64,000 nt of DNA. It comes from Macrostomum lignano. Its lineage: Eukaryota. The translations under genes and the position numbers were made by a program. The notes under the pieces were generated by a model. It ran no database searches. It saw only the letters and a program-made list of their open reading frames with translations, and was not told the origin of the DNA. Of this stretch, positions 429-64,000 are shown piece after piece. Each line of letters opens with the position of its first letter. The stretch's first letter is position 1. Location of the stretch: contig NIVC01003879.1 in the NCBI GenBank assembly GCA_002269645.1, positions 1 through 64,000 on the forward strand. The letters are read 5' to 3'.

Positions 429-1367
429 TCATTGAGACGTTGAGATTCGCACGGTTCCAGAGTCGTAAAGGTAGTAGAATATGCCATCGTACTTGCCATC
501 AGAGTACATCTTGTAGACTCCGTTCGGGTTGATGGCCGCGCAGTGTCCATACCACCAGCCGGCTGACTTCTCGGCAGCGCAGCTGCCATAAAAGTGTGCG
601 TCATTGTCATATTCGGGCGTGCTGAACTGATGGTCATTTGGCAAATAAAGTGCTTCAGTTCGCTGTCCGACGCTTGACCTGCTCGCGTCCAGTGGTCCCA
701 TCGAGCACCTGTACTTATCGGCCACTGGGCTAACAGAGAACGGAGCATTCTCAGCCCAGTACCAATTGCCGTTGAAGTCACTGAACTCCCAGCGGACTCT
801 CCACACTCCAGTGGCGGTCAGCTGGTGGAGCTGCTCCAGTCCCATCCAGTAGTTGAGTCTCTCGCCCTGACCGAATCCATTCACGTAGTCCCCCCAGTTC
901 CGGTCGAAGCTGACGGAGCCGTCGACTCTGTGCTGGAACGTCGTCCAGCAGCTCAACGGTTCCTTGAACTGAAATTAACAAGAGATGAAGTTCGCGCATG
1001 AGAACTCAGCTACAACTCGACAGTATCCTGATCACTGAGCTGTGCTACTCACCCACAGCTTCGCCAGGCCAGGATCTCCCTCGTGCCGGCACTTTTGGCA
1101 GGCGTCCTTGCTGCCTCGGTTGCACACCAGCAGGGTGCAGTCACCCGACTCAGAGCTAAATGAGACAGCGTGAGCAGCTTCGGCTCTGCTCAGACAGTCG
1201 ATCTTGCTGTCACTCTTGAGCACTCGCAGCACCCTGTACTCAGAGATGTCACTGGACTGCAGCTTCCAATTCGAGAGGGAATTAGAAGAGTCAGCTGGCT
1301 CAGCAACCACAGCCAAGGCGATTGCAAACATCCAACAAGTACATGTAAGTCGCAGGTTGGGACTCAT
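429..1367 (-). CDS. Secreted fibrinogen-related protein (signal peptide + PAN/apple-like segment + fibrinogen C-terminal domain); exons 1367-1053 and 968-429
   Basis: Hydrophobic N-terminus (WMFAIALAVVA). Phase-0 intron TGG|GTGAGT...TTTCAG|TTC joins the two ORFs in frame (LW-FKEPLSCWTTFQHRVDGSVSF). FReD motifs: FQHRVDGSVSFDRNW, YWMGLEQLHQLT, FSTPEYDND, SCA...GWWYGHC..INPNG. Confidence 0.9.
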
Positions 1368-2705: not shown

Positions 2706-3853
2706 CAAGTGTTGGCACCCTTCAGGTTTGCGGTTACCCTTCAATCAAAATTAATCAGACCCACCGCTAATATACTTGATTTTCATTTAGACGCCTTGGT
2801 ATTTTATATACAATTGCTAGGTGACAAAGTTTAAAACGAATATGTACTCGCGCGTAAACAATTCAAGAAACTAATTCTTGAATTGTTTACAAGAATTACA
2901 TGTCATTATGAAGGCAGTGTGGGGTGCCAAGCAACAATCGAAATAATTAAGATAAAGTGAACATTTTACAACAACTTTTGAACTGATATTTTCAACTGAT
3001 ATTTAAAAAATCTAAAATTAGAAAAAATGAATATTTCCAGAATATTAGCAGCTTGCTGTGGATAAATATATAGAGTGAATAATGGCTTTGCAGCAGAATA
3101 ATGCATAGTCTGAATCTATACACAGTTTCATTTTTGGGCATTATTGTCATTCGAATTGTCCTGTGACTCATCGTCTGGGTCTCCTCCTCGTTTGTCCCCT
3201 CTTTCGTCTTGAGCGTCTTGCAGCCGACCGGTTTGTGTTTCAGCACTGATCTGCCTAAAACTATCCAAATAACGTAGCCGGCTGGCCAGTATAGCGCTCC
3301 TTGAGTTGTACTCGGATGCCTTAAAGCGGCGAACGGATCATATAAATGGTATTTTGTGCTCGATTTGGAACAGTGAAAATTGGATTTGTAAACCTATTGC
3401 GCAAATCTCTGGCATCCAAGCACTTGTCTAGATTTAGCCATATATTTTGAGGCTAATTGCATCAAACTGCTAATAAATCATACATATGCAAGCCAGGTGC
3501 AAAATTGCATGCTCATGGACACCTGCATTTGAAGTGAAACATTTTGGCTCTGAAACACTTCCATCCAATCTGAATGTTTTACCAACCAATGAATGCTCCA
3601 ACTAGCAAAAGCCGAGGTCGACGTCACCACCCAATGAAAAAGGATATGCACTATCGAAATTATTGACCATTGCGAGACTGTTGTTTTATCAAGTAAAGTC
3701 AGTTATTTGGCTCTCGCATTGATAATCAAAAGTGATTATCAAGCTATAGTGGTGTGAGAGTCCAGAAGACCAAGGACACTCAGCATAAAATACGCTGAAT
3801 TTCAAATTCTGATGGCTGCAGCGCTAGTTTTTATTTCATTTTTGCTTAACAAC

Positions 3854-4249
3854 TTAACACGACTTGAGTGCTCTGGGGAGTGAACCGAGGTCATTTCCTT
3901 TCCCAATAACCAAACAATTCCAGATCTCTTGTGTGCTCACATTATTCAAGTAGATTTTTGCGCATCGGGAGCCGGAAGCTGAAGCTAAAAGCACTTGCTG
4001 CTTCGTCACTTTGAAGCCGCACAGGTGCTTCTCAATCAAAGACACAACCGGTCCGAATTCATTTACCAGCTTCGGGCAGTCCACTATTTGGCCGTTTGCC
4101 GCTGTGACACCCAAGCAGCGAGTCTTGACAAGCTTGTCCACAGCTAGCGACTTGGCCGAAGCCACCGTCAGCGAGTTGTCATCATCCTCGGACACGAATA
4201 TAGCCCAGCGACGCACCTGCTGGGTCGCCCTCCAGCTCGGGTGTGACAA
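3854..4249 (-). other. Out-of-frame ORF overlapping the cGLR 3' end; possible frameshifted C-terminal extension
   Basis: 131-codon non-repetitive open frame overlapping the last 22 codons of the cGLR frame; no family recognised. Confidence 0.35.
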
Positions 4250-5629
4250 GCTGACCCATTTTGAAGAGGGCAGCGGCTCTGATGTAGGCTTTGCCGACCT
4301 GAGCGGTGTCTGGAATCTGACGCTCGACGTCCAACAAAAGCTGAGTCAATCTGCCAGACCGAGACCCGACCGGAGCTTCACTCCTGATGCTTAAACAAAG
4401 CTCAGTTGCCGTGTTCATTGTGGAAACGTGCTTCGTAAAGCTGAAATCACTGCATTCCAGTAACTCTACTGATAGAATGTAGTAAGAAAGAAACGAAAGG
4501 AGAATCACGTTGACAGAAAATTTAGGCAGAGACTCAGTGAACGGTTTCAGGTCGCTGAGCAGGTTGTCTGCTGACTGACGGACGGCTGCTACAATCCTCG
4601 ATTTTGAGTCGTGGTCTCGCTTGAGGAAAACACGGGCGTCACGCAAGAAAAAATGTCTCATGCAGACGTCCTCGGAGTCTGAGCTCTCCATCATTGCCAC
4701 GAGAATGTCCAATGACTGCTGCACCAGCGCCAGCAGGTTGTCCGGGTTCCAGTCTTTCGCCGGTGTCTCGTCAAGCATGTAGAACAGCAAGTTTTTGCCA
4801 ACGTACGTCTTCAGACCGCTCACTCGGCTGCTGATCACCCTCTTGATGAGGAACTTGACGAGGATGAAGAACTGGCCCTGCACGCTGGTAAGATTGTGCA
4901 TGACGGACCTTTCCAGCAGGGTTGTGCTCACTCGAAGTCGGCTGCCCTCCAGACCGGGCGGCGCACTGCTGACAGCGTGGCACCTTGGCGACTCGCCCAG
5001 CACCTCTTCTCTCAGCGCTCTCATGATGTCATCGGACATGCAAGTCCTGTATCCGGGCTCCAACAGCTCGATGTGAGGGTAGCGGCAGCAGGAATGCGCC
5101 AAAATCAGATCAATTGCAGGCATCAGCTCCGACTCTTCGAATGCGATATTCGGTGCTAAAACTGCATTTTGAGGACACGTGTAGATGATAAATTACGTTT
5201 CTGTGTGTAATTTTGGATAAATTAGTATGCCATTATAACGAGAATTTCCTTACTGCGAACGTGTGCCTTGACGTGCCCGTCCTCATACTCCGCAGGCTCG
5301 ATCTGCTCGCAGCCGTTGCGTCGAAATCCGGCCTGCTGGCCGTCAGCGACTTGCTGGTGAATGTGGATTTGCTGGCTCGCGTCTGTCATGATGTACGTCA
5401 CGTCGATGTCGGAATCTGGAGCGACGCTTCCATCGATGCAGAAAAGGTTGGCGCCCCAGCCGTCAGCGTAGCTGCCGAAGATGTGTAAACTTTTAGCCAG
5501 CAGTCGGAGCAGGTCCTCAGCTGCCATTGCGAAGCCGCTCTGCACCGCTGCGTTGGTTGAGCGAAACCCGGCAGTTCTCATGGCTGATGACAGCGATGCG
5601 CTGTGAGCTGCGAGCTCACGGTGAGCCAT
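4182..5629 (-). CDS. cGAS-like receptor / Mab-21 family nucleotidyltransferase; exons 5629-5254 and 5161-4182 (possible frameshifted extension to 3854)
   Basis: Phase-1 intron CGCA|GTAAGG...TGCAG|TT joins ORFs 5222..5629 and 4182..5123 in frame. Motifs: FGSYADGW...DSDIDV, third acidic residue in PAIDLI, RVSTTLLERSVM (like RxSFxxxEKxL), LKTYVGKNLLFY (like LSSYHxKTxxF), W...LLALVQQSL, HFFL. Confidence 0.85.
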
Positions 5630-6639
5630 ATTTACCGCTCATACAGAACTTGCGAAATTTTTTTGGAAACCATCCGAGGCGAATACCTTTTGTTGTTAAA
5701 CTTTTATACATTAATTAAAGAGCTCTGGATTGTACCATATCGGGGGTCCAGGGCACAATTTCTGGTTATTTACTTATAACTGGCAATTGTCCTATTTTTG
5801 AGTGCTTTGCAAGGTTCCTTATTAAGAGGTTGCTTTCACTAACGCAAAATTTCACAACCGCTAAATCATCTTTTTTTCATAAACGCGAAACTCAGGCCCT
5901 TGGCCTGGCCCCCAATTATGAGCTGGATAGGCGATGCCCTTGGGGTTGTAGCAATAGAGGTGTAGCTATGTCCGCCTGGAGTCTTCCCCTCGGAAACAAG
6001 CCTTCCAGACTCACTCCAATAGTTAGCCCTTTCCAAGACTTCTGGGTTTCCCGCTCTTGGACGGCTTTTCAGTAAAAATCCAATTCTGTTTTTCGCGCAC
6101 TCCCGAGGACCTGTCTGCTGGGGGGTAGCCTGGGTGGACTCGGTCCTAGCACCGTCCCTGATTCCACTGTTGGGTTGGCGGTGTCTTGTACCGTAGGCTT
6201 GAAGTCCCTCGCTCTTTCCCTAGCTTAAGCTGGGGCCCAATTCCATGTCTCGGGGTATCTCGGGCCCTGTACTACTAATGTCTGGGCCCCTGGTAGTGCC
6301 CCTCTGCGGCAGAGCCCCTCCCAGGGCTGATCCGCGGGTAGCCAAGCTTCCCACCCCCGTTTAACAACAAACTCAAAAATCACAACTGCTAAAATAACTA
6401 AATGTCAATTATGATTTGTTCTCCTCCTTTGCGCTTAACTGTCAATTTTCGTAACACTTGAAGCCTACTGCCTTATCCAAATGCCTAAAATATAATACTA
6501 CTTTGACTCTTAGTGCTAACCGAGCTTTCACGGCTTCTTGCTCCCTATTCTGGGTCTCTACGACCTCGATAACTCCCTATTTCATGCAGATTCCTACTCA
6601 GGGTCTCTATGGTCTTTATAAAGCGCCGCAATGCCGGGC

Positions 6640-7514
6640 AGGCACTCATTTTGGCGCCGCAGGTACTCATTTTGGCGCCGCAGGCACTCATTTTGGCGCT
6701 GCAGGCACTCATTTTGGCGCTGCAGGCACTCATTTTGGCGCCGCAGGTACTCATTTTGGCGCCGCAGGTACTCATTTTGGCGCTGCAGGCACTCATTTTG
6801 GCGCTGCAGGCACTCATTTTGGCGCCGCAGGTACTCATTTTGGCGCTGCAGGCACTCATTTTGGCGCTGCAGGCACTCATTTTGGCGCCGCAGGTACTCA
6901 TTTTGGCGCTGCAGGCACTCATTTTGGCGCTGCAGGCACTCATTTTGGCGCTGCAGGCACTCATTTTGGCGCCGCAGGTACTCATTTTGGCGCTGCAGGC
7001 ACTCATTTTGGCGCTGCAGGCACTCATTTTGGCGCCGCAGGTACTCATTTTGGCGCTGCAGGCACTCATTTTGGCGCTGCAGGCACTCATTTTGGCGCTG
7101 CAGGCACTCATTTTGGCGCCGCAGGTACTCATTTTGGCGCTGCAGGCACTCATTTTGGCGCTGCAGGCACTCATTTTGGCGCCGCAGGTACTCATTTTGG
7201 CGCTGCAGGCACTCATTTTGGCGCTGCAGGCACTCATTTTGGCGCTGCAGGCACTCATTTTGGTGCTGCAGGCACTCATTTTGGCGCTGCAGGTACTCAT
7301 TTTGGCGCTGCAGGCACTCATTTTGGCGCTGCAGGCGCTATGTTTTGTCGCCCTGCAGCAAAATGCATTCATTCAAAGCTGCAAAAATCAAAAATAAGCA
7401 GAAAGTCTACATTTTTAACTTAAAATGTGGAGGGGCTAGATACTAATACTGCCCCCCCCATTTTAAAAAGTTGGGGGGCATGACCCCACTGTCCCCCCGT
7501 TCCTACCGCCTATG
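6640..7514 (-). mobile_element. 21-bp minisatellite (GGCACTCATTTTGGCGCTGCA, 6640-7335) followed by a hAT-MITE-like terminus ending CCGCCTATG
   Basis: Unit is the reverse complement of the arrays at 26005-26150 and 37920-38580. Terminal segment GGGGGGCATGACCCC...CCTACCGCCTATG resembles non-autonomous hAT ends; no matching left TIR or TSD found. Confidence 0.6.
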
Positions 7515-16500: not shown

Positions 16501-19500
16501 TTTTATATGTAAGTCGCATTTTTGGCCAAAAACTACGTCGCATTTTTGTTAAAATGAAGTCGCATGGCCGACCGAATTTTGGAGGTTGCGCATGTATGTT
16601 GTGGGTATATATGTGCATATGACTATGGTTATGGTGTTAAGAAATGCAGTTATAAGATGCTTGCCTGTCTCCCATACCCCAGGTACCTTTACGCCCAGTG
16701 CTGCCTAGAGACTGGCGACCTGAGCGCAGCAGAGGACGCCTTGATAAACAGCCGAACTGGCTTAGCATTTGCTCAGCCACAGGCTCAACAGACGCCAATT
16801 CAAACTGGATTGAATGCCAATGACGATCTATCTAGACTCTGCAGAGACTTTGGCGGCGATAATTCGGAAGATTCCACAGCTGTTGGATTTGCTTTGAAAC
16901 TTCTCGGCGACGTTTATCGTCGTACAGATCGAAATGAACGAGCCGCCGAGTGCTATAGGAGAGCGTTGGGCTTTAATCCTTATCTGTGGACCTGCTACGA
17001 GGCATTGTGCAGCCTGGGCGAGGCGCCAGATCCTGCTGTCGCGTTTCCGGTAGCTATACGATTTGCTTTATATTTGCCCTATCCATTGTTGAGTACATGG
17101 ACCACTAAATAAAATAGATGTGACTTGCATTGTAGTGTCCATGGACCACTAAGTACTCGTATAGTAAATGTGTGACCTGTATTTTATGGTTCATGGACCA
17201 CTAAGTGGAGTAGATGAGCATGCTTGGGCGCAACCTAGGGATTTACCCGGCCGTTTCTATTGGCAACACACACATGTAAGTCGCTATTGGACGGAATAGT
17301 AGTCACGTGACTGCTCTCAGCCAATAGCGACTTACATGTGTGTGTTGCCATTAGAAACAGCCGGGTGATTCCCAAGGTTGCGCATGTATGGTAGATGAGT
17401 GACCTGCATTGTTGGTTCCATGGATCGACTATCAAGTGGAGATAAGCAGTGTCCATGGACCATTAAGTAAAGTAGATGCGTGTGACCTGCATTGTTAGGA
17501 CCATGGATCACTAAACTGATCGACACTGTTTCTTGGAAGCTTTTAAAGGCTCACCTTAACCCTAGAATTCTTGAGAATTATAGCGAATTTTAGTTAAATA
17601 TTAAAAATACTTTAAATTATGCCCTCAGGTGCAGACAGCAACAGCAGGTCTGGACACCTCCTCGGCTTCCTCGTTGTCAGCTGACTGCGGTGGCTTAGGC
17701 GGTGATGCCAGTTCAGTTGGTATAGCTAATAATAACAGCAATAGTACTCGACAGTTCTCAGTGGAATCGGCGGCGTCCACGGATGCTTCTGGTTGGTTTG
17801 AATTTAATATAATTGCTTTATTGATGTTCCCTGACTTTTCTTATCTGGACTGGAGGCCCTGAATTCGACACTCTTGAACAAAAAATCTGGACTGGAGTCC
17901 CTGAATTCGACACTCTTGAACAAAAAATCTGGACTGGAGTCACTGAATTCGACACACTTAAACAAAAAATCTGGACTGGAGTCCCTGAATTCGACACTCT
18001 TAAACAAAAAATCTGGACTGGAGTCACTGAATTCGACACACTTAAACAAAAAATCTGGACTGGAGTCCCTGAATTCGACACTCTTGAACAAAAAATCTGG
18101 ACTGGAGTCCCTGAATTCGACACTCTTGAACAAAAAATCTGGACTGGAGTCACTGAAATCGACAATAGACACCCTTAAACATAGATTCAAGATTCTGGAT
18201 AGAAGTCCCTGAATTCGACACTCTTGAACAAAAAATCTGGACTGGAGTCCCTGAATTCGACACTCTTGTACATAAATATTGGATTGGAAACCCTCGGATT
18301 ACTAATCACTTATCACTGAACTGAAGACAAATGCTAACATAACATTTCTCTCTTATTACCCCAAAAATAGTTTCTGGCGCTGGTTTCGCTACCGTTTCGG
18401 TTGCCTCAGCCACCGCCGCCTCAGCTGCAGCTGCCACTCCAGCCGTTAGCGGAGTCATCCCGGCGCCGCCAGCCATCGCCGACGCGCCAATGCGACGAAG
18501 ACCTAGAAGCGGTCGGCAGCAGCAGCAGCAGCAGCAAATTGCTCCAGGAGCCGATTCGGCCGTTAATTTCCCCTACATTCTAGACTCGGCCTATTCAACT
18601 CCTTTGCCTTCGTCTATGGCTGCGTCCACCGCTGCCGCAATCGCCGCCGTCGCTGCGACACCCGCGGCATCCGCGGTAGCGACAGCAACGGTTCTCCCAG
18701 TGTCGACGCCTGTAGCGCAGAACTATCGTGCGCTGGCCATGTCGCCACTGGGCGCCAAGGAGAACAATCAGGGAGTGCGAACGCGTGCCCAGACGCGATC
18801 GCTGATGTCATCGCGGGCTGGCAATATTTCTAGGCGGAGTCGGTCGTTCCGGAGCAAAGATAATAGCTCAATGGAGGACGAGGTGAGTAGAAATTTTAAT
18901 TATTGCTATAATAGATTGCATGCATAGCAGTTGACTTGAGATATAGGTATTAATAGCGGCAACGGAGATTATTAGACTGACGAACATACCAGGTAGAGTG
19001 ACGGAGATTACAGGTAGAATTACGCATATTACAGGTAGACTGACAGACATTACTGATATTATATGTATGTAGAGTTACAGATATGACAGGTGGAATTACG
19101 GCTATTACAGGTAGAATTACGGCTATTACAGGTAGAATTACGGCTATTACAGGTAGAATTACGGCTATTACAGGTGGAATTACGGCTATTACAGGTGGAA
19201 TTACGAATATTACGGGTAGAATGACGGAGATTGCAGGTAGAATTACGCATATTAAAGGTAGACTGACAGACATTACAGGTGGAATTACTGATATTACAGG
19301 TAGCCTGAAGGAGAATGGAGATCACAGGTAGGATCACAGCTTAGAGGTAGACTGATGCAAAATACAGGTGGATTGACAGAGATTACAGCAGGTAGATTGA
19401 AAGAGATTACAGGTAGATTGACAGAGATTTCAGGTAGATTGACTGAGATTACAGGCAGATTGGTGGAGATTACAGGTAGATTGACAGAGATCACAGTTAC

Positions 19501-25416: not shown

Positions 25417-28400
25417 TCAATTTTTCGCCTTTCTTCTCGACGCTTTCGTCCGTTCATGTCGAATTGTCTCGGCTTCTAAAGCCGACATCTCCACTAATCG
25501 CTGTACGAACGATGCCGGGCCTCCGATGGCCGCCTCGGCGAATCGGTACCTCTCCTCTGCAGTGATAGAGACCAGTGTTTAGGCTCAAGATTTCCTAGAT
25601 ATCACAGGGTTTTTTGTGCGATTCACACCTATAGGGATCAAGATTTCCTAGATATCACAGGGTTTTTGTGCGATTCACACCTATAAGGGCCAACCTCTAA
25701 GTGTACACGCTTGACCAGTAGAAAGTCGGGGGACCGCTGTACACCCTGTGTGAGCGTGTGTATTATTGCGTGCCTGCGTACAGTATTGGCGCGCTTGTAG
25801 GTGTTCAGGTTTCGAGATGGATTTCGCCTAAGCCGTTACGCCAGGGTGCCCACAAATGCATGCACATTAATACAGTAATACATATACGTGTTAGACTGTT
25901 GAACTGACAGCAGTTTGAGCATCTCCAGGGACATGCCAATGCTTTGTCCTTTCCCCACCCCACCTTGTGACTTTCTATGGAAATCGATCATTTTGCTTCA
26001 GGGCACCAAAATGAGTGCCTGCGGGGCTAAATTGAGTGTGCCTGCGGTGCTAAATTGAGTGCCTGCTGCGCTAAATTGAGTGCCTGCGGGGCTAAATTGA
26101 GTGCCTGCTGCGCTAAATTGAGTGCCTGCTGCGCTAAATTGAGTGCCTGCGAATGTACACTTGACTTTCTAATCGTCAGGCTCATAAGTGTGGCTTCGCA
26201 CTGCTGTCTGTTCACGCAGGGAGCCACAAATTCTCACCATCTGAGTTGGCCTGCTGATTCAGTCTCGAGTTTTGCCCGCCGCCAGTCTGCTGTAGCCTGG
26301 CGTAGCTTGGCCGCTGCAGAGCTCTTCTGTTGTTGCTTAACGCCTGTTTGTGCTGTTGTTGTTGTTGCTGCTGCTGCTGCTGCTGCTGGCTGGTCGGAGC
26401 GCCCATCATCTGAGAGTCACTAATTGGCGGATAGCTGGCGGTCTCTTCTGCAGTTGAAGTGTCCCCTGTTGCGCCTGTAACTGCTGCGTCGCCTGATTGG
26501 AATTTGTGGTTTTTTATTATCAGCCTGTGTTGCTTTTGCGTGCAATCTCACCTGTCAGACAAAACCAGCTGACAGAATCACACCTGTCAGACAGAACCAG
26601 CTGACAGAATCACACCTGTCAGACAAAACCAGCTGACAGAATCACACCTGTCAGACAAAACCAGCTGACAGAATCACACCTGTCAGATAGAACCAGCTGA
26701 CAGAATCACACCTGTCAGATAAAACCAGCTGACAGAATCACACCTGTCAGACAAAACCAGCTGACAGAATCACACCTGTCAGATAGAACCAGCTGACAGA
26801 ATCTCACTTGTCAGACAAAACCAGCTGACAGAATCACACTTGTCAGACAAAACCAGCTGACAGAATCTCACCTGTCAGACAGAACCAGCTGACAGAATCT
26901 CACCTGTCAGATAGAACCAGCTGACAGAATCACACCTGTCAGACAGAAACAGCTGACAGAATCACACCTGTCAGACAGAACCAGCTGACAGAATCTCACC
27001 TGTCAGACAGAACCAGCTGACAGCATCACATCTGTCAGACAGAACTAGCTGACAGAATCACACCTGTCAATGGAACAACACCCGTGATGAGGAAATGCTT
27101 TACAACTCACCAAACACGCTGGAGTCCCGAAGCCCCATTGCTCGTTGCGAGCTCGACTGCTTTGGATTTTTCCCCTTATTCCACAGCCTCCACTGCTCGG
27201 GGGTGCCGCTAGTCGCCATCGCGGATCCATTTGCCAGTCCGAAGCCGATTCCAGCGAGGTCCAGGGTTCGATTGCTGCCCCTGAGCAGCACTCGGGAGTG
27301 AGTGGGCGGCGGCGGAGGGCGCTGAAGAGTCGCCTGCTGTTGCGGCGCGTTGGCCATCCTGTGAGACGATTTTGCGCCATCGCCTTTGATCAGTGCTCCC
27401 GAGCTTGAAAAATAATTAGGATTTGAATAGATTATAGTTGGATTGCGAAATTCGTGTTTTCATCGAAAATCTACTTGATTATAGAAACTTTGGGTTAGTG
27501 GTAGCTTAGTTGATATTAGCGTGTACTTTTAATGGCTTCTTGATTTCTGAAATTACTTGTTTTTTTATCGTACTTATCCCAAACTACATGTATACTGTCC
27601 GTCAAAAGTTCCGGAACCCTTGCTACGATGTCTTCTAGCGGACATAATTTCAGTCCGTTTCAATTGTAACTTGATTCAAATGAAAGCTGCGGAGCGGATC
27701 TCAGCTCCATGATGTGGTCAAGAAAAAGTTTATTCGAAGGAGCGCGTGTGAACAGGCCAGTGTTATGTACATAAAGGTTAGAGAAAAAAGTGAGGAAAAG
27801 ACAAACAAGCAATTGACTCTCCCATGAAAGCTGACTGCACAAGAATCCATTAGAGCCTGTTGATTTCAACACAAGTTTTGGCCATAGACTAATGTTAGCC
27901 AGGCTGAACACTGCGCGCAAACCGATTCCTTCCCATGTGTGTTTGCTCCATAGACTCAGCAACCATAGACAATTGCTTGTTTGCCTTTTCCTCACTTTTT
28001 TTCTCTAACCTTTATGTGCATAGCACTGGCCTGTTCACACGCGCTCCTTCGAATAAACTTTTTCTTGGCCACATCATGGAGCTGAGATCCGCAGCTTTCA
28101 TTTAAATCAAGTTACAATTGAAACGGACTGAAATTATGTCCGCTAGAAGACATCGTAGCAAGGGTTCCGGAACTTTTGACGGACAGTATAATTGGCGATA
28201 ACAATAACTTGATCTATTATTATATAGTAACAGGAATTGTTTGTTGAATTAGATAGCAATAATGCGATCGGTGGCGGCAAAATGGGATTGGTGGCGGCAA
28301 AATGGTATCGGTGGCGATAAAATGGGATCTATGGTGCCAAAATGGGATCTATGGTGCCAAAATGGGATCTATGGCGCCAAAATGGGATCTATGGCGCCAA

Positions 28401-31400
28401 AATGGGATCTATGACGCCAGAATGAGATCCTGCGCCAAAATGGGATAGTGGCGCTTAAATGGGATCTATGGCGCCAAACTGAGATCGGTGGCGCCAAAAA
28501 AATGGGATCTATGGTGCTAAAATGGGACTGGGGGCGCCAACATGGAAACTATAGCTCCAAAAATGGGATCGCTATACGACGCCACAAAAAAGGATGCTTT
28601 GCAGGGGGGGGGTCCGTGCTCACAGCGCCGTTAAACTGTCTGCATCAGCTGGTTCACCAGCAGCGGTGGCAACTTTCTGGCCAAACAGTCGAGTCACCAG
28701 CAAGCTGCCCACCAGCAGCCGGCAGTTGCACTCGATTGTAGCCTCCTGCACTGTCAACTCAGACTGGCAGCACAGTCTGTGGTTCTTCTCTCGAATTTCA
28801 GGCAACCAGCCACTAGCAGCTGATAACTGCTTCTGCTCAATTGCACTTGTCGAGCTCATCATCATCTCCAGATGATGCTGATAGCCAATTAGCTGAAATC
28901 GTCGACCTTTTGACGAAGCCATTCTTTTGCTTGTGCTGAGTCCGTTAAGTATGGGATTGGCACATTTCTTATATATTCCACATCTATCAGAGACAATATT
29001 CCGCATTAATATTAACCAAAGAGTCACATCTCATGAACTATTCATACTGTACATATACGGATTGCTCAGGACTTGCATACGGCAGTTAGGAGCTTAAAGT
29101 TTCTGGTAAGAATAACTGACTATATAGCTTGCACTTTTAGGTAGCCACTAGCAACAGTGATAACGGCGGCTTCGGGACACGAGATTAAGTCTGTGGTAAA
29201 ACTCCCGTTTGATCCAGGGGTGGTAGATACGATCTTTCGTTTGAGGAGCGCCATTACATTCGAGGGGGGCGCCATTTCTTTCGAGGGGGGTGCCATTTCG
29301 ATCATTTGAGACGGGCGCCATTTCACTTGATAATGGCGCCATTTCTTTTGAGAGGGGCGCCATTTCTTTTGAGGGAGCGCCATTTCATTTGAGAGGGGCG
29401 CCATTTCTTTTGAGGGAGCGCCATTTCATTTGAGACGGGCGCCATTTCACTTTAGAGGGCGCCATTTCTTTTGTGGGAGCGCCATTTCTTTTGAGGGAGC
29501 GCCATTTCTTTTGAGAGGGGCGCCATTTCATTTGATAATGGCACCATTTCTTTTGAGAGGGGCGCCATTTCTTAGGAAGCGCCAATTCTTTTGAGGTAGC
29601 GCGATTTATTTTGAGAGGGGCGCCATTTCTTTTGAGAGGGGCGCCATTTCTTTTGAGGGAGCGCCATTTCATTTGAGAGGGGCGCCATTTCTTTTGAGGG
29701 AGCGCCATTTCATTTGAGACGGGCGCCATTTCACTTTAGAGGGCGCCATTTCTTTTGTGGGAGCGCCATTTCTTTTGAGGGAGCGCCATTTCTTTTGAGA
29801 GGGGCGCCATTTCATTTGATAATGGCACCATTTCTTTTGAGAGGGGCGCCATTTCTTAGGAAGCGCCAATTCTTTTGAGGTAGCGCTATTTATTTTGAGA
29901 GGGGCGCCATTTCTTTTGAGAGGGGCGCCATTTCTTTTGAGGGAGCGCCATTTCATTTGAGAGGGGCGCCATTTCTTTTGAGAGGGGCGCCATTTCTTTT
30001 GAGGGAGCGCCATTTCATTTGAGAGGGGCGCCATTTCTTTTGAGGGAGCGCCATTTCATTTGAGACGGGCGCCATTTCACTTTAGAGGGCGCCATTTCTT
30101 TTGTGGGAGCGCCATTTCTTTTGAGGGAGCGCCATTTCTTTTGAGAGGGGCGCCATTTCATTTGATAATGGCACCATTTCTTTTGAGAGGGGCGCCATTT
30201 CTTAGGAAGCGCCAATTCTTTTGAGGTAGCGCGATTTATTTTGAGAGGGGCGCCATTTCTTTTGAGAGGGGCGCCATTTCTTTTGAGGGAGCGCCATTTC
30301 ATTTGAGAGAGGCGCCATTTCTTTTGAGGGAGCGCCATTTCATTTGAGACGGGCGCCATTTCATTTGAGAGGGCGCCATTTCTTTTGAGAGGGGCGCCAT
30401 TTCATTTTAATGGGCGCCATTTTTAATATGAGGGAGCACCATTTTTGAGGGGGCGCCATTTCATTCCAAGGGGCGCCATTCCGTCTATTGGTTAGCTTAG
30501 TTATCAATGCTACGCTCTCCCAAACAATACAGCCAGGTGTACTGAGGAAAAAAAGCTACGGAGCTACGACACTGCTTCCTCTGAAAAGCCATCAAATTTT
30601 TTACGCTTTTGCTACAATGTGCCGTCAGGTAAAATGAAATGACGTTTCATGCAAAAGAAAGTTTGCATACATAAATATTGAGAGCCAAGATTCTTGAGTG
30701 CACCGGTTGTATGCGATATTGCGTGAAGTCAAAGCACGGTTGACAGTGATTGATGAAGGACGGAGGAACAAGCATATTGTGTCAGTAGGGACTGCAACCT
30801 CTTTGAGCTCTCTACAAGTCTAGCATGCATATCCAGCTGGTCATAGCGATTTGTAAAGCTAATGTGGGTTAATTGCAGATTGAAAATTTGAATTAGGGGA
30901 GGGAGAGACTTGATTGGTTGATAGAGAGATCGACAGATTGATTGTGAGACTAATGGATTGGTGGATTCATTGATAGATTGGTAGATTGATAGATATATTG
31001 ATTGATTGATTGATTGACTGATTAATGGAAAGATTGATAAATTAATGTAGATTGATAGATCATTTCATTGACTGATAGCATGGATAGATTGATTGATTGA
31101 TTGATAGATGAGAGATTGATTTATTGATGGAGATTAATGGTTTAGTAGTAAAAATAATGAAATAATATATAGATTGTCATTGACTCATACAGACATTGAT
31201 AGATTGATAAAGAGATCAAGAGTTTGATAGAGATTGACGAATTGATAGATTTATACAGAGATTATTTGATTAATTGATTGATATTAATATATTGAAAGAT
31301 TGATTGACCCAGATTGCAGGCTGTTGCAGAAAAAAGGGCTAGTTATGCCTTTTACAGATTTCCCTCACCATAATTTTCCTTTGTTAGCAAGGCTCAAAGA

Positions 31401-37303: not shown

Positions 37304-40300
37304 TTATGGTTCGTTATTTTTTGTTAAGCGTCTTTTGTCTTCCTCATCCTCCGTAGCCACATCGATTGCCTCTCCGCTTGAAGCTTCAACATTTAGCCAA
37401 CGAACGGTTCGACGATCAACCGACTTTGCGCTGAGCCAAGCCTGGCATGGGAATCTTCGTCGCTCGCCAGATGGCTCGACAATGTCCACCGACTGCAGAA
37501 ACCAGTGCGCGTAAGCTGAATCTCCTGGTCCATTAGCTAAGTGCTCAACTTTGATGCGTCTCAACTGGCCCACGTTTGGCAAGCCGGTCAGAAAAAACTT
37601 GTCGGTGCGACCTCGGGCAAACTGGCGTCGGTGGGTGCGGCTGTTGGACAGAAGTACCGGCTGCAAAATTCGGGGGGAAGGGTAGCGGAGCTCGGCTCTA
37701 ATGCCACATGCCAAAATAACAAACCATCAAAACCCATCGATCAGGGGCTGCTAATAGCTAAGCGATAACGCGTCCAACCCTTTAGTCGAAAACGTACATA
37801 GCCGCAGGGGCGTCGCCACCGGTGGGGGGGGACAAGGGGACATGCCAATGCTTTGTCCCCCGACCCCACTTTTGTTGACCTGTTATGGAAATCAATAATT
37901 TTGATTCAGGGCGACAAAAATGGGGCCTGCGGCGCTAAAAAAAGTGCCTGCATGTGGCGCCTAAATGAGTGCCTTTGGCGCCAAAAGGAGTGCCTGCGGC
38001 GCTAAAATGAGTGCCTGCGGCGCTAAAATGAGTGCCTTTGGCGCTAAAATGGAGCCTGCGGCGCTAAAATGAGTGCCTGTGGCGCTAAAATGAGTGCCTT
38101 TGGCGCTAAAATGGAGCCTGCGGCGCTAAAATGAGTGCTTGCGGCGCTAAAATGAGTGCTTGCGGCGCTAAAATGAGTGCCAGCGGCGCTAAAATGAGTG
38201 CCTGCAGCGCCAAAATGAGTGCCTGCAGCGCCAAAATGAGTGCCTGCAGCGCCAAAATGAGTGCCTGCGGCGCTAAAATGAGTGCCTGCGGCGCTAAAAT
38301 GAGTGCCTGCGGCGCTAAAATGAGTGCCTGCGGCGCTAAAATGAGTGCCTGCGGCGCTAAAATGAGTGCCTGCGGCGCTAAAATGAGTGCCTGCGGCGCT
38401 AAAATGAGTGCCTGCGGCGCTAAAATGAGTGCCTGCAGCGCTAAAATGGAGCTGCGGCGCTAAAATGAGTGCCTGCGGCGCTAAAATGAGTGCCTGCGGC
38501 GCTAAAATGAGTGCCTGCGGCGCTAAAATGGAGCTGCGGCGCTAAAATGAGTGCCTGCGGCGCTAAAATGAGTGCTCGCGGCTCTGAAATGATCGCTGAC
38601 AACACAGATTCTGCAAATAATGTACACGTAGAAATTTAGTCATGTAGATGTACGTGCAGAATTCTTGGCTTTGTCCCCCAACCATAAAATCCATGGCGAC
38701 GCCCCTGCGTGTAGGCTCTAGAAATTTTCAGAGATTTGGTTCACTATTTTCAGCATTTATAACTCTCTACGCTAAGCTTCAATCGCTGCGTTTACTTTGC
38801 GACGATATGTATCGATATTTTACTTCAGAATTAATTTAAAATCACTGGATATCGAAAGTTAAACAGAAGCAGCCGGCCGCTTACCTGCGAAGCGCCTCGA
38901 TCTCCACACAGAGTGAGCCGCACCGGGTGCCTCGTACCGGCGCCAACCCGATCTCCGGTCACCACGGTGACGGTGTAGTCATAGCAATGAGGACCAGGAG
39001 CCGTAGCCGGAGGATCGTTATAGTAGTTTTCGAAATCGTCAGATCCGCCATTAAGTGACGATGCTGCATCCTCCGGTGGCGCTACGATGTGCACCACCTG
39101 CGGCTCCTCGTCTGCGTAAACCGAAGCTTCCGAACTTTCTCCGCGACGACAACCTTCTTCGTCGCCGTCGCCTTCTTCAGCGGTTTTACCACCGCCCGAC
39201 CTTTTTCTACCGGTTGCCGCAACTTTAACAGTCTTCTTTTTGGCCAGGCCGGCCCTCCCGCGCGACTGTCTGTCGCAGCCATCGTTCCCGCCGCTTTTGC
39301 CGTCCACATCTTCGGAGTCGCCGTCGGCAGCCAAATAGGTGAGAATTTCGCCGCTGCTTCGCACTAGGAAGTCGCGCTCTCGCCGACTGCACGGCATTGG
39401 CGGCGCCGACCGCAGAAATCCGTTGCTGCCCGCTGAAGTGTGGGATTTTCGTGCGGGATTTTTTTCCAATTTGGGGATTTTTTGCGACTTGGGGATTTTT
39501 CGCGACTTGGGGATTTTTGTGCGATTTGGGGATTTTTGTGCGATTTGTGGATTTTTGTGCGATTTGGGGATTTTTGTGCGATTTGGGGATTTTTGTGCGA
39601 TTGCGGGGATTTATGTGCGATTTGGGGATTTTTGTGCGATTTGGGGATTTTTTGAGCGATTGGGGGGATTTTCGTGCGCTGGAGAGGACACAGTGAGATG
39701 GAGAGAACACAGTAAGGATGGAGAGGACACAGTGGGGATGGAAAGGACACAGTGGGGATGGAAAGGACACAGTGGGATGGAGAGGACACAGTGGGGATGG
39801 AGAGGACACAGTGGGGATGGAGAGGACACAGTGAGGATGGAGAGGTCACAGATGAGTATGGAGAGGACACACTGGGGATGGAGAGGACACAGTGGGATGG
39901 AGAGGACACAGTGGGATGGAGAGGACACAGTGACACAGTGGGATGGAGAGGACACAGTGGGATGGAGAGGACACAGTGGAATGGAGAGGACACAGCGGGG
40001 ATGGAGAGAACACAGTGGGATGGAGAGGACACAGTGGGGATGGAGAGGACACAGTGGGATGGAGAGGACACAGTGGGGATGGAGAGGACACAGTGAGGAT
40101 GGAGAGGACACAGTGAGGATGGAGAGGTCACAGATGAGTATGGAGAGGACACACTGGGGATGGAGAGGGCACAGTGAGGATGGAGAGGACACACTGGGGA
40201 TGGAGAGGACACAGTGGGGATGGAGAGGGCACAGATGAGTACGGAGAGGACACACTGGGGATGGAGAGGGCACAGTGAGGATGGAGAGGACACACTGGGG

Positions 40301-43049
40301 ATGGAGAGGACACAGTGGGGATGGAGAGGACACAGTGGGGATATAGAGGACACAGTGAGGATGGAGAGGACACAGTTGGGATAGAGAGGACACAGTTGGG
40401 ATGGAGAGGACACAGTACGGGGATGGAGAGGACACAGTGGGGATGGAGAGGGCACAGTGGGGATGGAGAGGACACAGTTGGGATGGAGAGGACACAGTAC
40501 GGGGATGGAGAGGACACAGTGGGGATATAGAGGGCACAGTTGGGATGGAGAGGACACAGTTGGGATGGAGAGGACACAGTTGGGATGGAGAGGACACAGT
40601 TGGGATGGAGAGGGCACAGTGAGGATGGAGAGGACACAGTGAGGATGGAGAGGACACAGTGAGGATGGAGAGGACACAGTGGGGATGGAGAGGACACAGT
40701 GAGGATAGAGAGGACACAGTGGGGATACAGAGGACACAGTGGGAATGGAGAGGACACAGTTGGGATGGAGAGGGCACAGTGGGGATACAGAGGACACAGT
40801 TGGGATGGAGAGGACACAGTTGGGATGGAGAGGACACAGTGGGGATGGAGAGGACACAGTGGGGATATAGAGGACACAGTTGGGATGGAGAGGACACAGT
40901 TGGGATGGAGAGGGCACAGTGGGGATGGAGAGGACACAGTGGGGATGGAGAGGTCACAGATGAGTACGGAGAGGACACACTGGGGATGGAGAGGGCACAG
41001 TGAGGATGGAGAGGACACACTGGGGATGGAGAGGACACAGTGGGGATGGAGAGGGCACAGTGGGGATGGAGAGGACACAGTTGGGATGGAGAGGGCACAG
41101 TACGGGGATGGAGAAGACACAGTGGGGATATAGAGGACACAGTTGGGATGTAGAGGGCACAGTGAGGATGGAGAGGACACAGTGGGGATGGAGAGGACAC
41201 AGTGAGGATAGAGAGGACACAGTGGGGATACAGAGGACACAGTGGGGATGGAGAGGACACAGTTGGGATGGAGAGGGCACAGTGGGGATACAGAGGACAC
41301 AGTTGGGATGGAGAGGACACAGTTGGGATGGAGAGGACACAGTGGGGATGGAGAGGACACAGTGGGGATATAGAGGACACAGTTGGGATGGAGAGGACAC
41401 AGTTGGGATGGAGAGGGCACAGTGGGGATGGAGAGGACACAGTGGGGATGGAGAGGTCACAGATGAGTACGGAGAGGACACACTGGGGATGGAGAGGGCA
41501 CAGTGAGGATGGAGAGGACACACTGGGGATGGAGAGGACACAGTGGGGATGGAGAGGGCACAGTGGGGATGGAGAGGACACAGTTGGGATGGAGAGGGCA
41601 CAGTACGGGGATGGAGAAGACACAGTGGGGATATAGAGGACACAGTTGGGATGTAGAGGGCACAGTGGGGATATAGAGGACACAGTGAGGATGGAGAGGA
41701 CACAGTGAGGATGGAGAGGACACAGTGGGGATGGAGAGGACACAGTGGGGATAGAGAGGACACAGTGAGGATAGAGAGGACACAGTGAGGATAGAGAGGA
41801 CACAGTGGGGATACAGAGGACACAGTGGGGATGGAGAGGACACAGTGGGGATGGAGAGGACACAGTGAGGATGGAGAGGGCACAGTGAGGATGGAGAGGA
41901 CACAGTGGGGATGGAGAGGTCACAGATGAGTACGGAGAGGACACACTGGGGATGGAGAGGGCACAGTGAGGATGGAGAGGACACACTGGGGATGCAGAGG
42001 ACACAGTGAGGATGGAGAGGACACACTGGGGATGGAGAGGACACATTGGGGATGGAGAGGGCACAGTGGGGATGGAGAGGACACAGTTGGGATGGAGAGG
42101 GCACAGTACGGGGATGGAGAAGACACAGTGGGGATATAGAGGACACAGTTGGGATGTAGAGGGCACAGTGGGGATATAGAGGACACAGTGAGGATGGAGA
42201 GGACACAGTGAGGATGGAGAGGACACAGTGGGGATGGAGAGGACACAGTGGGGATAGAGAGGACACAGTGAGGATAGAGAGGACACAGTGAGGATAGAGA
42301 GGACACAGTGGGGATACAGAGGACACAGTGGGGATGGAGAGGACACAGTGGGGATGGAGAGGACACAGTTGGGATGGAGAGGACACAGTGAGGATGGAGA
42401 GGACACAGTGGGGATGGAGAGGACACAGTGGGATAGAGAGGACACAGTGGGATAGAGAGGACACAGTGGGGATGGAGAGGACGCAAGTGGCGAGGACACA
42501 GTGAGGATGGAGAGGACACAGTGGGGATGGAGAGGACACAGTGGGGATACAGAGGGCACAGTGGAGAGGACACAGTGGAGAGGACAGAACACTTAGCGGA
42601 AACGGGCACTCACATCCACCGCCTCTCAGGGAATGCTTTGGCCTAGGCTGGGGTAGCACAAGTGGCCGTTGGCGATCCAATCTAGCTTCGATTCGCTTAG
42701 CAAAGTTAACCGAGCTGGTCGCGGTTCGCTCGCTTCCCCGGTGACTGTCAGCCTGACTTTCCCCTTCCTCCTCGACCTCGTCTGCCGTTTTGCTGTGGCT
42801 GTTTCGGCTCCCCTCGCTAGGATGCATCCGACGTAGTCGCGACCGAAGTTGCCGATCGCTGAACTGATGCTTTAACGGTTTGTCGTGTAGTCTACGAGCG
42901 CTGATGAGGCTGCCAGACGCGTCCCACAATGGCGGATGCAGCGGCGCCGGGTTCAGTGTGCCCGAATGGTCGAAGCCATCTTCAAGGCGTTGCACGCGTA
43001 AGTAGTGATCCAGCTGTCTGGACACAGCGCGAACAATCTCCTTAGACAT
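37304..43049 (-). CDS. PLAT/LH2 domain-containing protein; exons 43049-42614, 39432-38885, 37660-37304 (or spliced at 37361 into the 34964 exon)
   Basis: Phase-compatible junctions GGAT|GTGAGT..TTCAG|CG and CAG|GTAAGC..TGCAG|CCG. PLAT motifs: YTVTVVTGDRVGAGT..V.LTLCG, FARGRTDKF, VGQLRRIKVEH, WFLQSVDI, FPCQAWL. Confidence 0.8.
37805..38707 (+). mobile_element. hAT-like MITE carrying an expanded 21-bp minisatellite
   Basis: 14-bp TIR CAGGGGCGTCGCCA / TGGCGACGCCCCTG enclosing AAAATGAGTGCCTGCGGCGCT units; no TSD match in the flanks. Confidence 0.8.
39470..39670. repeat. 20-bp minisatellite GGGATTTTTGTGCGATTTGG
   Basis: Direct reading. Confidence 0.9.
39680..42590. repeat. 2.9-kb array of a 20-bp minisatellite GGAGAGGACACAGTGGGGAT with higher-order duplications
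   Basis: Marker GTCACAGATGAGTA at 39845, 40127, 40953, 41456 and 41919. Confidence 0.97.
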
Positions 43050-53700: not shown

Positions 53701-56700
53701 TGGGAAGAAATCTCATTTAAAAATCTCAATTCCAAAATTCCCATTGTGAGAAATCGCCTTTAAAAATCCCAATTCCAAAATTCCCATTGTAAGAAATCGC
53801 CTTTAAAAATCCCAATTCAAATTAATATTGAGAGAAATCTCATTTAAAAATCCCAATTCCAAAATCCCAAGGGGAGAAATCTCATTTAAAAATCCCAATT
53901 CCAAAATTCCTATTGGGAGAAATCGCCTTTAAAAATCCCAATTCCAAAATTCCCATTGGGAGAAATCACCTTTAAAAATCCCAATTCCAAAATTCCCATT
54001 GGGAGAAATCGCCTTTAAAAATCCCAATTCCAAAATTCCCATTGGGAGAAATCGCCTTTAAAAATCCCAATTCCAAAATCCCAATGGGGAGAAATCTCAT
54101 TTAAAAAATCAAAATCCAAAATCCCAATGGGGAGAAATCTCATTTAAAAATATCCCAATTCCAAAATTCCCATTGGGAGAAATCGCCTTTAAAAATCCCA
54201 ATTCCAAAATCCCAATGGGGAGAAATCTCATGTAAAAATCCCAAATCTAAAAACCCAAAGAAACTATGGAATATAAAATGAATGTCAACTTAAACTCCGC
54301 AGGCGGATCCGGTGGCAGCGGTGGCGCTTCATCTCGCCGTCTGGAGCGCGCCCTGCACCAGCTGGAGGAGCTGTCCAATCAGCTGGCAAAGCCCGACCCG
54401 GAATTCTACCCGTTTAGGCGTAGATTATTTTTTGCTTGCAGCCTGCCGCCAGTCTGGCGACTTCAGCTGGATTTAGCTGACGCACTGGTAGCTGTTGGAG
54501 CCGTGAGCTCAGCCTTGGATATCTATCTGCGCTGGGATAGCTATTCTCAAATTATTGCCTGCTATCAGAAATTGGACAAGCCCGCTTTAGCGGAGAAGAT
54601 TATTAGAGATCGATTGGCTGAGTCTGAGACGCCCGAGCTGTACTGCGCGCTTGCCGAGGTTACAAGGTGAGAGGGAGACGTTTTTTGAGAACGGTATGAC
54701 CGATGCAGGATCAAGGATAGTGTCCAGCGTCAAGAATCTGACATTAAAGTGTTCCCAATCTATTAGGTGCCATTTCCAATCTATTTAGTGCCATTTCCGA
54801 TCTTTTAGGTGCCATTTCCTATCTATTAGGGTGCCATTTTCTATCTATTAGGGTGCCATTTCCAATCTATTAGGTGCTATTTCCAATCTATTTAGTGCCA
54901 TTTCCGATCTTTTAGGTGCCATTTCCTATCTATTAGGTGCCATTTCCTATCTATTAGGGTGCCATTTCCTATCTATTAGGGTGCCATTTCCTATCTATTA
55001 GGTGCCATTTCCAATCTATTTGGTGCCATTTCCGATCTATTAGGGTGCATACATGCGCAACCTCTGAAATTCGGTCGGCCATGCGACTTAGTTTTAACAA
55101 AAATGCGACGTAGTTTTTGGCCAAAAATGCGACTTACATGTAAAAAAACCATAAAGCAAAATTAACGCAACTTTGGGTAAACGGCAGGAGTAACTATGAC
55201 TGTCTTATTAAGCCAATATGCCTCGTCAGCTACTTAGTACTACTACCTGATTATTTTTTCGGGTGGGCATTTTTGCGACTTCCTTGGTTGGCCGCCAAAT
55301 CGGTCGGCCGGATCGGCCGACTCGGCCGACTGTTGCGCATGTATGTTAGGGTGCCATTTCCAATCTATTTGGTGCCATTTCCGATCTATTAGGCTGCCAT
55401 TTCCAATCTATTTGGTGCCATTTCCGATCTATTAGGCTGCCATTTCCAATCTATTTGGTGCCATTTCCTATCTATTAGGGTGCCATTTTCTATCTATTAG
55501 GGTGCCATTTCCAATCTATTAGGTGCCATTTCCAATCTATTTAGTGCCATTTCCGATCTTTTAGGTGCCATTTCCTATCTATTAGGGTGCCATTTCCTAT
55601 CTATTAGGGTGCCATTTCCAATCTATTTGGTGCCATTTCCTATCTATTAGGGTGCCATTTCCAATCTATTTGGTGCCATTTCCGATCTATTAGGGTGCCA
55701 TTTCCAATCTATTTGGTGCCATTTCGATCTTTTAGGTGTCATTTCCGATCCATTATATTAGGATGCCGATTCTGATCTATTAGGGTGCCATTTCCGATAT
55801 ATTAGGTGCCATTTCCGATCCAGAGGTTCCATAGAGACATTGTTACTCACCCCCATGCCACTCCCACTGTCAGAGACTGGAACCACCTGCACACTGCCTG
55901 GCGCCTATCCAACGGTCGATGCGCTCGTGCCGCTCGTTCCCTAGGCTACGTTGCCATGGTAGCCGGGCAATACGCCGAAGCTATGCGCCAGTTCGAGCTG
56001 GCACTAGCCGCCAATCACCTGCAGCCGAAGGCCTGGTTCACCTACGGCTGCTGCTGTTTGCAAGCTGGCGAAATTGAAAAAGCCGAGCTTGCATTCCGCC
56101 GCTCCGCTCAACTGGAACCGGACAACTACGAGGCCTGGACCAATTTGGGCACCGCTATGGTTCGTCGGGGCAATAAAATTGGCGCCTGTTCGGCGCTCCG
56201 CGAAGCGCTCAAATCTAATTGGGAACAATGGCGCGTCTGGGATAATTATCTGGCTGTATGCGCCGATACTGGTCAGTTTAATGAGGCCATGCGAGCTTAT
56301 CATCGATTATTGGAACTGCGGCCCAAATATTGGGATCCTCACTCTGCCGGGGTGCTCATTCGGGCAGCTTCTTCTGATGAGGAACTGATTGAGGATTCCG
56401 CTGCAAGGGAAGACCTGCGCAGGCGCCTGTTGACTCTGTTTGCTCGGGTGGCTGCGCAGTCCAGCGGCGATGCAGAGTTCTGGTGGCTGTACGCTAAGCT
56501 GCTGAGTCTGACTGAAGAGGGAGAGACAGGTGAGTGACTGGGGGTGAGACTGCTTTGACATGTGAGTCAGGTAGCTGATAGAGTGAGAGTCAGGTAGCTG
56601 ATAGAGTGAGAGTCAGGTGGCTGATAAAGTGAGAGTCAGGTAGCTGATAGAGTGAGAGTCAGGTAGCTTATAAAGTGAGAGTCAGGTAGCTGATAGAGTG

Positions 56701-63455: not shown

Positions 63456-64000
63456 TTAAATATTATAAAATTCACGCGCAGCCGCAGCCAGTCGACCAGG
63501 TAGAGCCCCGTCGCTTCGCTCCTCAGTAAGCCAGGTCGCCGCCTTCCGGACATCAGTCGGCTTGCCCGGGTTTCCCGCGAATGGTGCTGATGATGCGACT
63601 AGCAGCCGGTCGGACGGTATCGCTGCGACGCATCGGGCATGCCATCGGCTGTTGGAGACCCGGGCGGTGACTTCAAATATCAGTCTTGGCAACGACGCTA
63701 GGTACAGGCTGAGGGTGTCTTTGGGCCAGTCGGAAGATTCGACAACTAGAATGCGACAGTTTGCAAAGTCCGACGACACTAGCAACCGTAAGAACTGGTG
63801 CCAGGCCGAGCCACCGGGTTCGACTGGGCTACGTCTACGCTCTCGCAAACGAACCAGGAGGGGTAGATCTCGTTTATTTGCTAGCCCAACCTGTAGCTCC
63901 AGGGCTGCCATTTGTTGCTCCACACTGATTGCAGTATTCTGGACGTCCAACTCGGCTTCACCGACAGCCACTACCCTTGTCCATTCGCCCGCTATGAAAC
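63456..64000 (-). CDS. 3'-most ORF of the LTR element internal region, function unrecognised, runs off the window
   Basis: 171+ codon non-repetitive ORF ending about 140 nt before the PPT; no RT, RNase H or integrase motif visible. Confidence 0.5.
   Translation of the reverse strand, partial: FIAGEWTRVVAVGEAELDVQNTAISVEQQMAALELQVGLANKRDLPLLVRLRERRRSPVEPGGSAWHQFLRLLVSSDFANCRILVVESSDWPKDTLSLYLASLPRLIFEVTARVSNSRWHARCVAAIPSDRLLVASSAPFAGNPGKPTDVRKAATWLTEERSDGALPGRLAAAAREFYNI

Follow-up and report, generated by a model that had tools for sequence, protein, structure and literature searches.

A predicted cGLR-type nucleotidyltransferase gene of Macrostomum lignano, and the frameshift at the 3' end of one of its two near-identical copies

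Gene structure

The DNA analysed in this study (referred to below as the window) comprises 64,000 nucleotides (nt), positions 1 to 64,000 of contig NIVC01003879.1 of the Macrostomum lignano assembly GCA_002269645.1. At positions 4182–5629 of the minus strand it carries the gene BOX15_Mlig005485g2, whose product is predicted to be a cGLR-type nucleotidyltransferase of the cGAS/Mab21 family. Translation of a two-exon splice model, together with a cluster look-up, revealed a protein of 451 amino acids (aa) that is residue-for-residue identical to GenBank PAA49439.1 (P0158). The span 4182–5629 proposed for the gene in a preliminary description of this DNA therefore agrees exactly with the annotated coding sequence of PAA49439.1; as the extent of the gene it falls short, since homologous coding sequence continues to position 3128.

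Exon 1 (5254–5629, minus strand), placed by its translation and splice sites, begins with the ATG at 5629–5627, ends at the donor CA/GTAAGG (the slash marks the junction) and matches P0158 and the WormBase-derived model P0001 at 100%. It provides residues 1–125 and the first base of codon 126, and encodes the spine helix, the GS motif (G52, 5476–5474; S53, 5473–5471), a [DE]GWG insertion and the acidic pair D74 (5410–5408) and D76 (5404–5402). Intron 1 (5162–5253, minus strand; 92 nt, GTAAGG...TGCAG) follows, with an acceptor picked for agreement with PAA49439.1 and with the spacing of the paralogs (RILAPN). An alternative in-frame acceptor, TTTTAG, located 6 nt downstream, was rejected, as the annotated proteins do not use it.

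Exon 2 up to the annotated stop (4185–5161, minus strand; acceptor TGCAG/) encodes residues 126–451, identical to P0158. It contains the codons of D143 (5111–5109) and of K248 in the motif KTYVGK (4796–4794), a CC pair (150/151), a CH pair (186/187), the motif RVSTTLLER and the onset of a lineage-specific C-terminal region; the match to Pfam Mab-21_C (PF20266) covers residues 231–319 (approximately 4847–4581, minus strand). A possible intron within this exon, at about 4441–4508 (GTGATT...TTTCAG), was also rejected: none of the available lengths (40, 59 and 68 nt) is divisible by three, the paralogs code through the region, and PAA49439.1 reads across it. The paralog model P0003 skips the counterpart of this segment by means of an AG that is absent from the window gene.

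Assignment to the cGAS/Mab21 family

The spliced window protein matched only M. lignano entries named "Mab-21 domain-containing protein" (82–97% identity). The only Pfam domain detected was Mab-21_C (PF20266), which scored 24.8 bits, just above the cut-off of 24.1, and which 12 of the 13 family members share. Li et al. (2023; PMC9980059) recognized cGLRs by (i) the motif h[QT]GS X8-20 [DE]h[DE]h X50-90 h[DE]h, (ii) homology in both lobes and (iii) similarity of AlphaFold models. The window protein follows the motif, reading I-F-G52-S53, 20 residues, D74-I-D76-V, 64 residues and I-D143-L (i.e. IFGS - 20 aa - DIDV - 64 aa - IDL), and further on K243-T-Y-V-G-K248. Homology in the C-terminal helix bundle is indicated both by Mab-21_C and by hhalign, from the strand of the third Asp to the end of the bundle.

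It was the profile–profile comparison that proved decisive for the C-terminal two thirds of the protein. A 65-sequence family profile was aligned with mouse and human cGAS plus cnidarian, bivalve and brachiopod cGLRs taken from Table S3 of Li et al., which gave a probability of 99.6% and an E value of 5.5e-24 over residues 109–312 of P0001 (adding 16 to P0001 numbering gives that of the window protein). This alignment matches D143 to the Asp in cGAS SVDIIL and K248 to the Lys in SYHVK. Taken by themselves, the N-terminal 118 residues gave a probability of 68.6% and an E value of 4.6e-5, and were not significant with a 12-sequence profile; here GS is paired with GS, and D74/D76 (P0001 D58/D60) with the E/D of cGAS EFDVMF. 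On the combined evidence of profiles and predicted structure (see below), we assign the window protein to the cGAS/Mab21 family as a cGLR-type nucleotidyltransferase member in which all catalytic positions are intact.

Active-site residues and their conservation

The preliminary description had pointed to an intact set of catalytic residues, and this was borne out: GS, DxD, the third Asp and the Lys are all present and align with the catalytic positions of cGAS, which in the human enzyme we take to be G212/S213, E225, D227, D319 and K414. The GS-to-DxD spacer had been described as long, at about 19 aa; it is long indeed, although counting the residues from S53 to D74 gives 20. The profile alignment to cGAS traces this length to a family-specific insertion of 10 residues in the GS loop, which carries the conserved [DE]GWG.

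In a 13-sequence family alignment S53, G57, W58, G59, S73, D74 and D76 are invariant, while D143 and K248 are present in at least 90% of the sequences. The analysis was extended to about 110 paralogous domains, i.e. every domain recovered from all fetched family proteins and aligned to the family hidden Markov model (HMM). The Gly was retained in 108/111 of them, the Ser in 110/111, the first Asp in 107/111, the second Asp in 105/111 (five carry Asn), the third Asp in 100/109, the Lys in 144/147 and the Trp of the [DE]GWG signature in 110/113. The catalytic residues are thus retained in 92–99% of the domains, far more than chance would allow. This points to selection acting on a site that binds metal and nucleoside triphosphates (NTPs), and speaks for catalysis.

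The absence of a cGAS zinc ribbon, also noted in the preliminary description, was confirmed in two alignments, which place a 12-residue gap where mouse cGAS has its CCESSGAKCC thumb. The isoelectric point (pI) of the catalytic core is 5.8, compared with 8.95 for the catalytic domain of mouse cGAS. The acidic core and the missing thumb together argue against nucleic-acid binding in the manner of cGAS. The CC and CH pairs (C150/C151 and C186/H187) are conserved in the family and are common to the bivalve cGLR motifs hCxxWP and GCHhVP.

Predicted structure

The AlphaFold2 model is that of P0001, the first 428 residues of which are identical to window residues 17–444 and are followed by 11 residues that are frame-shifted in the source. 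The model (mean predicted local distance difference test score, pLDDT, 72.8; predicted template modelling score, pTM, 0.78) shows secondary structure elements in the order expected of a Pol-β-type nucleotidyltransferase, followed by a helical bundle, and is mostly helical from about residue 335. D58 and D60 (P0001 numbering) open the strand 58–65, and D127 lies within the strand 125–134; a nucleotidyltransferase sheet would be expected to place them in this way, which is indirect evidence that the three carboxylates may share a two-metal site.

Foldseek comparison with the PDB returned 73 matches at E <= 0.001. The best of them were mouse, human and pig cGAS (E 6e-6, probability 1.00, about 376 columns), with a target-normalised TM (template modelling) score of about 0.5, which is modest; MAB21L1, Cv-cGLR1 (8GJW) and Sp-cGLR1 (8GJY) came next. 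The model has a cGAS-like fold and the predicted structural homology to cGLR / CD-NTase enzymes that is expected of a cGLR.

A lineage-specific family

When 1.84 billion representative proteins (clusters at 50% identity) were searched exhaustively with an HMM, there were 445 matches, including 107 below 1e-10 and 75 below 1e-30. All strong matches whose source names were looked up (7/7) were from M. lignano, whereas the three weak ones looked up (E ~1e-10), confined to the region from the third Asp to the bundle, included one bivalve (Mactra) protein. Ankyrin repeats were found in 7/7 multidomain members scanned, mostly in long arrays at the N-terminus, the largest reaching about 1000 residues. 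The C-terminal domain of about 250 aa was not found outside the genus in the searches made, and it gave no Pfam match. The window gene is thus a compact member, lacking ankyrin repeats, of an expansion that is specific to Macrostomum at the species or genus level. In the paralogs P0010 and P0012 the C-terminus extends further than in the window gene and includes another conserved module (FLP[DR]...FP...INF.AL...), again with no Pfam match.

The sister copy and the frameshift

The genome contains a second copy of the gene, PAA85217.1 (BOX15_Mlig005485g1, 596 aa), on contig NIVC01000340.1 (L001), and each copy has the ANAPC3/TPR gene as its upstream neighbour. Alignment of the two loci over 11.6 kb showed 99.29% identity, with 21 gap openings against 22 mismatches. 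The two 99.3%-identical copies are alleles or homeologs of a stand-alone member of the family.

From 5829 down to 4196 (1634 nt) the window is 100% identical to the sister copy. Pairwise alignment with L001 showed that the sequences part at 4192–4195, where the window has ATTCGTGTCCGAGG and the sister copy ATTCGGTGTCCCGAGG. The frameshift site and stop (4182–4195, minus strand) read ATTCG-TGTCC-GAGGATGATGA, with GG reduced to G and CCC to CC relative to copy g1; the resulting 2-nt deficit, i.e. two single-base homopolymer contractions, accounts for the in-frame TGA at 4184–4182. The intact reading ...GYIRCPEDDDNSLT... is present in P0159 and P0161, while the WormBase-derived models of the same gene (P0001 and P0160) have further changes of frame in the same region. 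A 30-nt micro-intron (GTGCGT...CCGAG) bridging the frameshift was considered and discarded: its phase is wrong, it lacks an acceptor, and comparison with the sister copy reveals simply a difference of 2 nt.

Downstream of the stop, the remainder of exon 2 continues in another frame (3941–4181, minus strand) and encodes DDDNSLTVASAKS...IYLNN of the C-terminal domain. This part is supported by tblastn with P0001 residues 433–519 (98.9% identity), by the open frame 3854–4249 and by the donor AAT/GTGAGC at 3940. Intron 2 (3320–3940, minus strand; GTGAGC...TTTAAG) differs from that of copy g1 by seven substitutions and a 6-nt indel. The last exon (3128–3319, minus strand; ASEYNSRS...NNAQK, stop TGA at 3130–3128) was matched by tblastn with P0001 residues 518–580 (100% identity); it can be read in frame only without the frameshift, and no further stops occur in the downstream exons. 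A truncation at residue 451, as read from the sequence, leaves the catalytic core (residues ~1–346) complete and removes the end of the C-terminal domain.

Does the frameshift reflect an error in the long-read haplotig consensus or a genuinely truncated allele? Since the copies differ by indels as often as by substitutions and the WormBase-derived models are discordant, an error appears at least as likely. The 100%-identical tract 5829–4196 stops exactly at the frameshift, with single-nucleotide polymorphisms and small indels on its 3' side; this boundary and the share of indels suggest residual consensus indels, or else a recombination or assembly junction.

A decaying pseudogene or null allele, i.e. 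a locus without function whatever the rest of the family does, would also account for the TGA after residue 451, and the short 451-aa product is the one annotated in GenBank. We nevertheless consider this explanation rather unlikely. The 1634 nt upstream of the lesion, which include the promoter-proximal 200 nt, exon 1, intron 1 and most of exon 2, show no difference from the intact copy, and the exons beyond the lesion have remained open. Moreover, the two lesions are homopolymer contractions situated 6 nt apart, as is typical of consensus error, in a pair of haplotigs with an equal share of indels and substitutions, and the catalytic core would be complete even if the truncation were real.

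Other features of the window

An open reading frame (ORF) at 429–956 (minus strand), situated on the 3' side of the cGLR-like gene at a distance of about 2 kb, gave a strong match to Fibrinogen_C (E 1.2e-34). Fibrinogen-related proteins are common immune lectins of invertebrates; the adjacency of this ORF to the cGLR-like gene may be a coincidence. On the opposite strand, an ANAPC3/CDC27-like TPR gene (plus strand; 849-aa product in the gene calls of the contig) starts at ~10825, some 5 kb upstream of the cGLR-like gene. The TPR ORFs 16564–17112 and 55806–56537 may be exons of this gene, which would then reach ~56537 and have very long, repeat-filled introns. Towards the end of the window there are a coding exon of ribosomal protein S17e (59778–60115, plus strand; E 4.7e-59) and a weak TatD-DNase-like ORF (63456–63971, minus strand; 23.7 bits, under the 27-bit cut-off).

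Minisatellite arrays with units of 20–46 bp occur throughout the window (54 TRF rows; e.g. 39680–42564, 6638–7336, 29235–30480 and 56564–57574), one of them with 144 copies of a 20-bp unit, and they give rise to long spurious ORFs in all frames (e.g. 6458–7423 and 39611–42592). A 21-bp satellite unit, GCAGGCACTCATTTTGGCGCT (reverse complement AAAATGAGTGCCTGCGGCGCT), is found at 6638–7336, 26008–26151 and 37917–38592, in opposite orientations; the first of these arrays is located 1 kb upstream of the start codon of the cGLR-like gene.

Comparison with known proteins

Li et al. (PMC9980059) remarked that "most platyhelminthes" lack cGLRs apart from Mab21-like proteins, but nevertheless included five M. 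lignano proteins (#89-93: PAA57558.1, PAA86972.1, PAA45980.1, PAA93208.1 and PAA68676.1) in their 140-enzyme cGLR screen, and ankyrin fusions of M. lignano cGLRs are entered in Table S2 of the same study. The screened proteins have in common with the window protein the pattern GS-[DE]GWG-...-SD[IV]D with its 20-residue spacer, RVSTTxLER, LKTYxAK and a C-terminal extension; PAA57558.1 corresponds to P0006 and is 46% identical to the window protein. The window gene differs from them in being another paralog, one without ankyrin repeats. The preliminary description had treated the cGLR chemistry of this lineage as not known to be characterised, a view that has to be revised insofar as M. lignano paralogs were catalogued and sampled in 2023, none being marked active. 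Li et al. placed these paralogs among the cGLRs by the three criteria given above, so that the clade is already recognized. A literature search for Macrostomum with cGAS, Mab21 or STING returned nothing specific, and found no Macrostomum cGLR paper after Li et al.

Outside the genus, the closest known proteins include the "GSxxEG...SDxD" cGLRs of bivalves, cnidarians and brachiopods (Mizuhopecten XP_021369834.1, Crassostrea XP_022300897.1; Cv-cGLR1, 8GJW), with a profile–profile E value of 2.1e-23 from the strand of the third Asp to the end of the helical bundle. The two groups have in common hCxxWP, GCHhVP, the lack of a zinc ribbon and the Foldseek matches 8GJW/8GJY; identity is about 18%, and the Macrostomum family adds the 10-residue GS-loop insertion, the acidic core and the C-terminal domain of about 250 aa. 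Vertebrate cGAS has the same fold (it gave the best Foldseek matches), and its catalytic G/S, E/D, D, D and Lys of SYHVK align with those of the window protein, which differs in its lack of a zinc ribbon, low identity (11–15%), longer GS loop and extra C-terminal domain. The protein cannot be counted as cGAS proper: no H(X5)CC(X6)C zinc ribbon was found, and an acidic core takes the place of the basic DNA-binding surface. MAB21L1/2 belong to the same superfamily (Foldseek E ~5e-5) and are single-copy, extremely conserved developmental genes. The window protein, in contrast, is part of a fast-diverging, lineage-specific expansion, of which 75 clusters (50% identity) gave E values below 1e-30. 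With 13–16% identity in structural alignments and at least 75 clusters instead of a single copy, it does not qualify as a MAB21L1/2 orthologue.

Proposed function

We consider it somewhat more likely than not that the full-length protein is a ligand-gated nucleotidyltransferase making a nucleotide second messenger. D74, D76 and D143 would hold two Mg2+ ions, and the full-length enzyme (596 aa in the sister copy) would link NTPs, in the manner of cGLRs, to form a messenger that is either cyclic or a short oligonucleotide. Because the core is acidic and the thumb absent, the ligand is probably not bound via a cGAS-like basic surface or zinc thumb; regulation would most likely reside in the GS (activation) loop, with its 10-residue [DE]GWG insertion, and in the C-terminal domain of about 250 aa.

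Several observations weigh against this proposal. In Pfam, neither Mab-21 (PF03281) nor NTP_transf_2 was matched significantly by the N-terminal half, so that of the two domain matches suggested for checking in the preliminary description only Mab-21_C was obtained, just above its cut-off; sequence and profile searches of the PDB gave no match. The cGLR motif is followed with a deviation, namely Phe at the [QT] position (the spacer being at the upper limit of X8-20). The M. lignano proteins accepted by Li et al. have M, L, F or T at this position, according to the tables of that study (PMC9980059). Active enzymes are noted as such in Table S3 (e.g. "01, Pd-cGLR"), whereas the M. lignano rows carry no note; going by that table, 0/5 screened M. 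lignano paralogs are marked among the 15 active enzymes, which does not prove inactivity. As regards other flatworms, cGAS and STING have been reported as lost in Schistosoma (PMC4117786) and were not found in Schmidtea (PMC13563047). Our human- and multi-species-seeded searches for STING gave no M. lignano protein among the best 120 matches listed, a result that is uninformative on absence.

The absence of any mark of activity among the screened paralogs would also be compatible with a non-enzymatic, Mab21-type scaffold that has kept the fold and acts through protein contacts, e.g. by activating a TBK1/IKKε-like kinase. There is a precedent in cGLR-related Mab21 proteins of shrimp, which activate IKKε directly, with no nucleic acid binding and no cGAMP (PMC12928593), and both the acidic core and the ankyrin modules, known for protein interaction and present on most paralogs, would suit such a role. 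We regard it as unlikely, however: G, S and the three acidic residues are near-invariant over ~110 diverged domains, many of them less than 50% identical, a pattern that is hard to obtain without selection for metal and NTP binding.

A further alternative is an active nucleotidyltransferase with another chemistry, producing linear 2'-5'/3'-5' oligonucleotides like OAS, or catalysing protein or RNA nucleotidylation or tailing. The GS...G...SDIDV core resembles the generic Pol-β nucleotidyltransferase signature, one paralog showed weak NTP_transf_2 / MTPAP-like / Polbeta matches (E 0.07–0.17), and the extra-long GS loop and added C-terminal domain are unlike those of characterised cGLRs. Those Pfam matches are, however, far under threshold, and significant homology was obtained only to cGAS/cGLR/Mab21, including the Lys of the SYHxK motif, which makes such a chemistry quite improbable.

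The Macrostomum expansion could represent a cGLR branch that senses a non-nucleic-acid ligand via its ankyrin or C-terminal modules. It might also signal by an uncharacterised nucleotide to a non-STING receptor, in a phylum in which cGAS and STING have reportedly been lost from the other members studied. This idea, which concerns the acidic-core, mostly ankyrin-fused members with the [DE]GWG insertion and the genus-specific C-terminal domain, is put forward as a decidedly long shot.

Significance of the gene and the family

The gene described here is already annotated, others have catalogued its family and sampled it biochemically, and the 3' end of this copy is an artefact or a lesion. A single gene adds little beyond the 2023 catalogue of Li et al.; its value is that of a compact, ankyrin-free member suited to expression, and for such work the 596-aa sequence of the sister copy is preferable to the 451-aa annotation.

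M. lignano is a genetically tractable flatworm, amenable to transgenesis and RNA interference. Since other flatworms (Schistosoma, Schmidtea) are reportedly without cGAS/STING and this species is tractable, its expansion is a useful one: it offers a practical place to ask what cGLRs sense, and to what they signal, if their canonical partners are missing.

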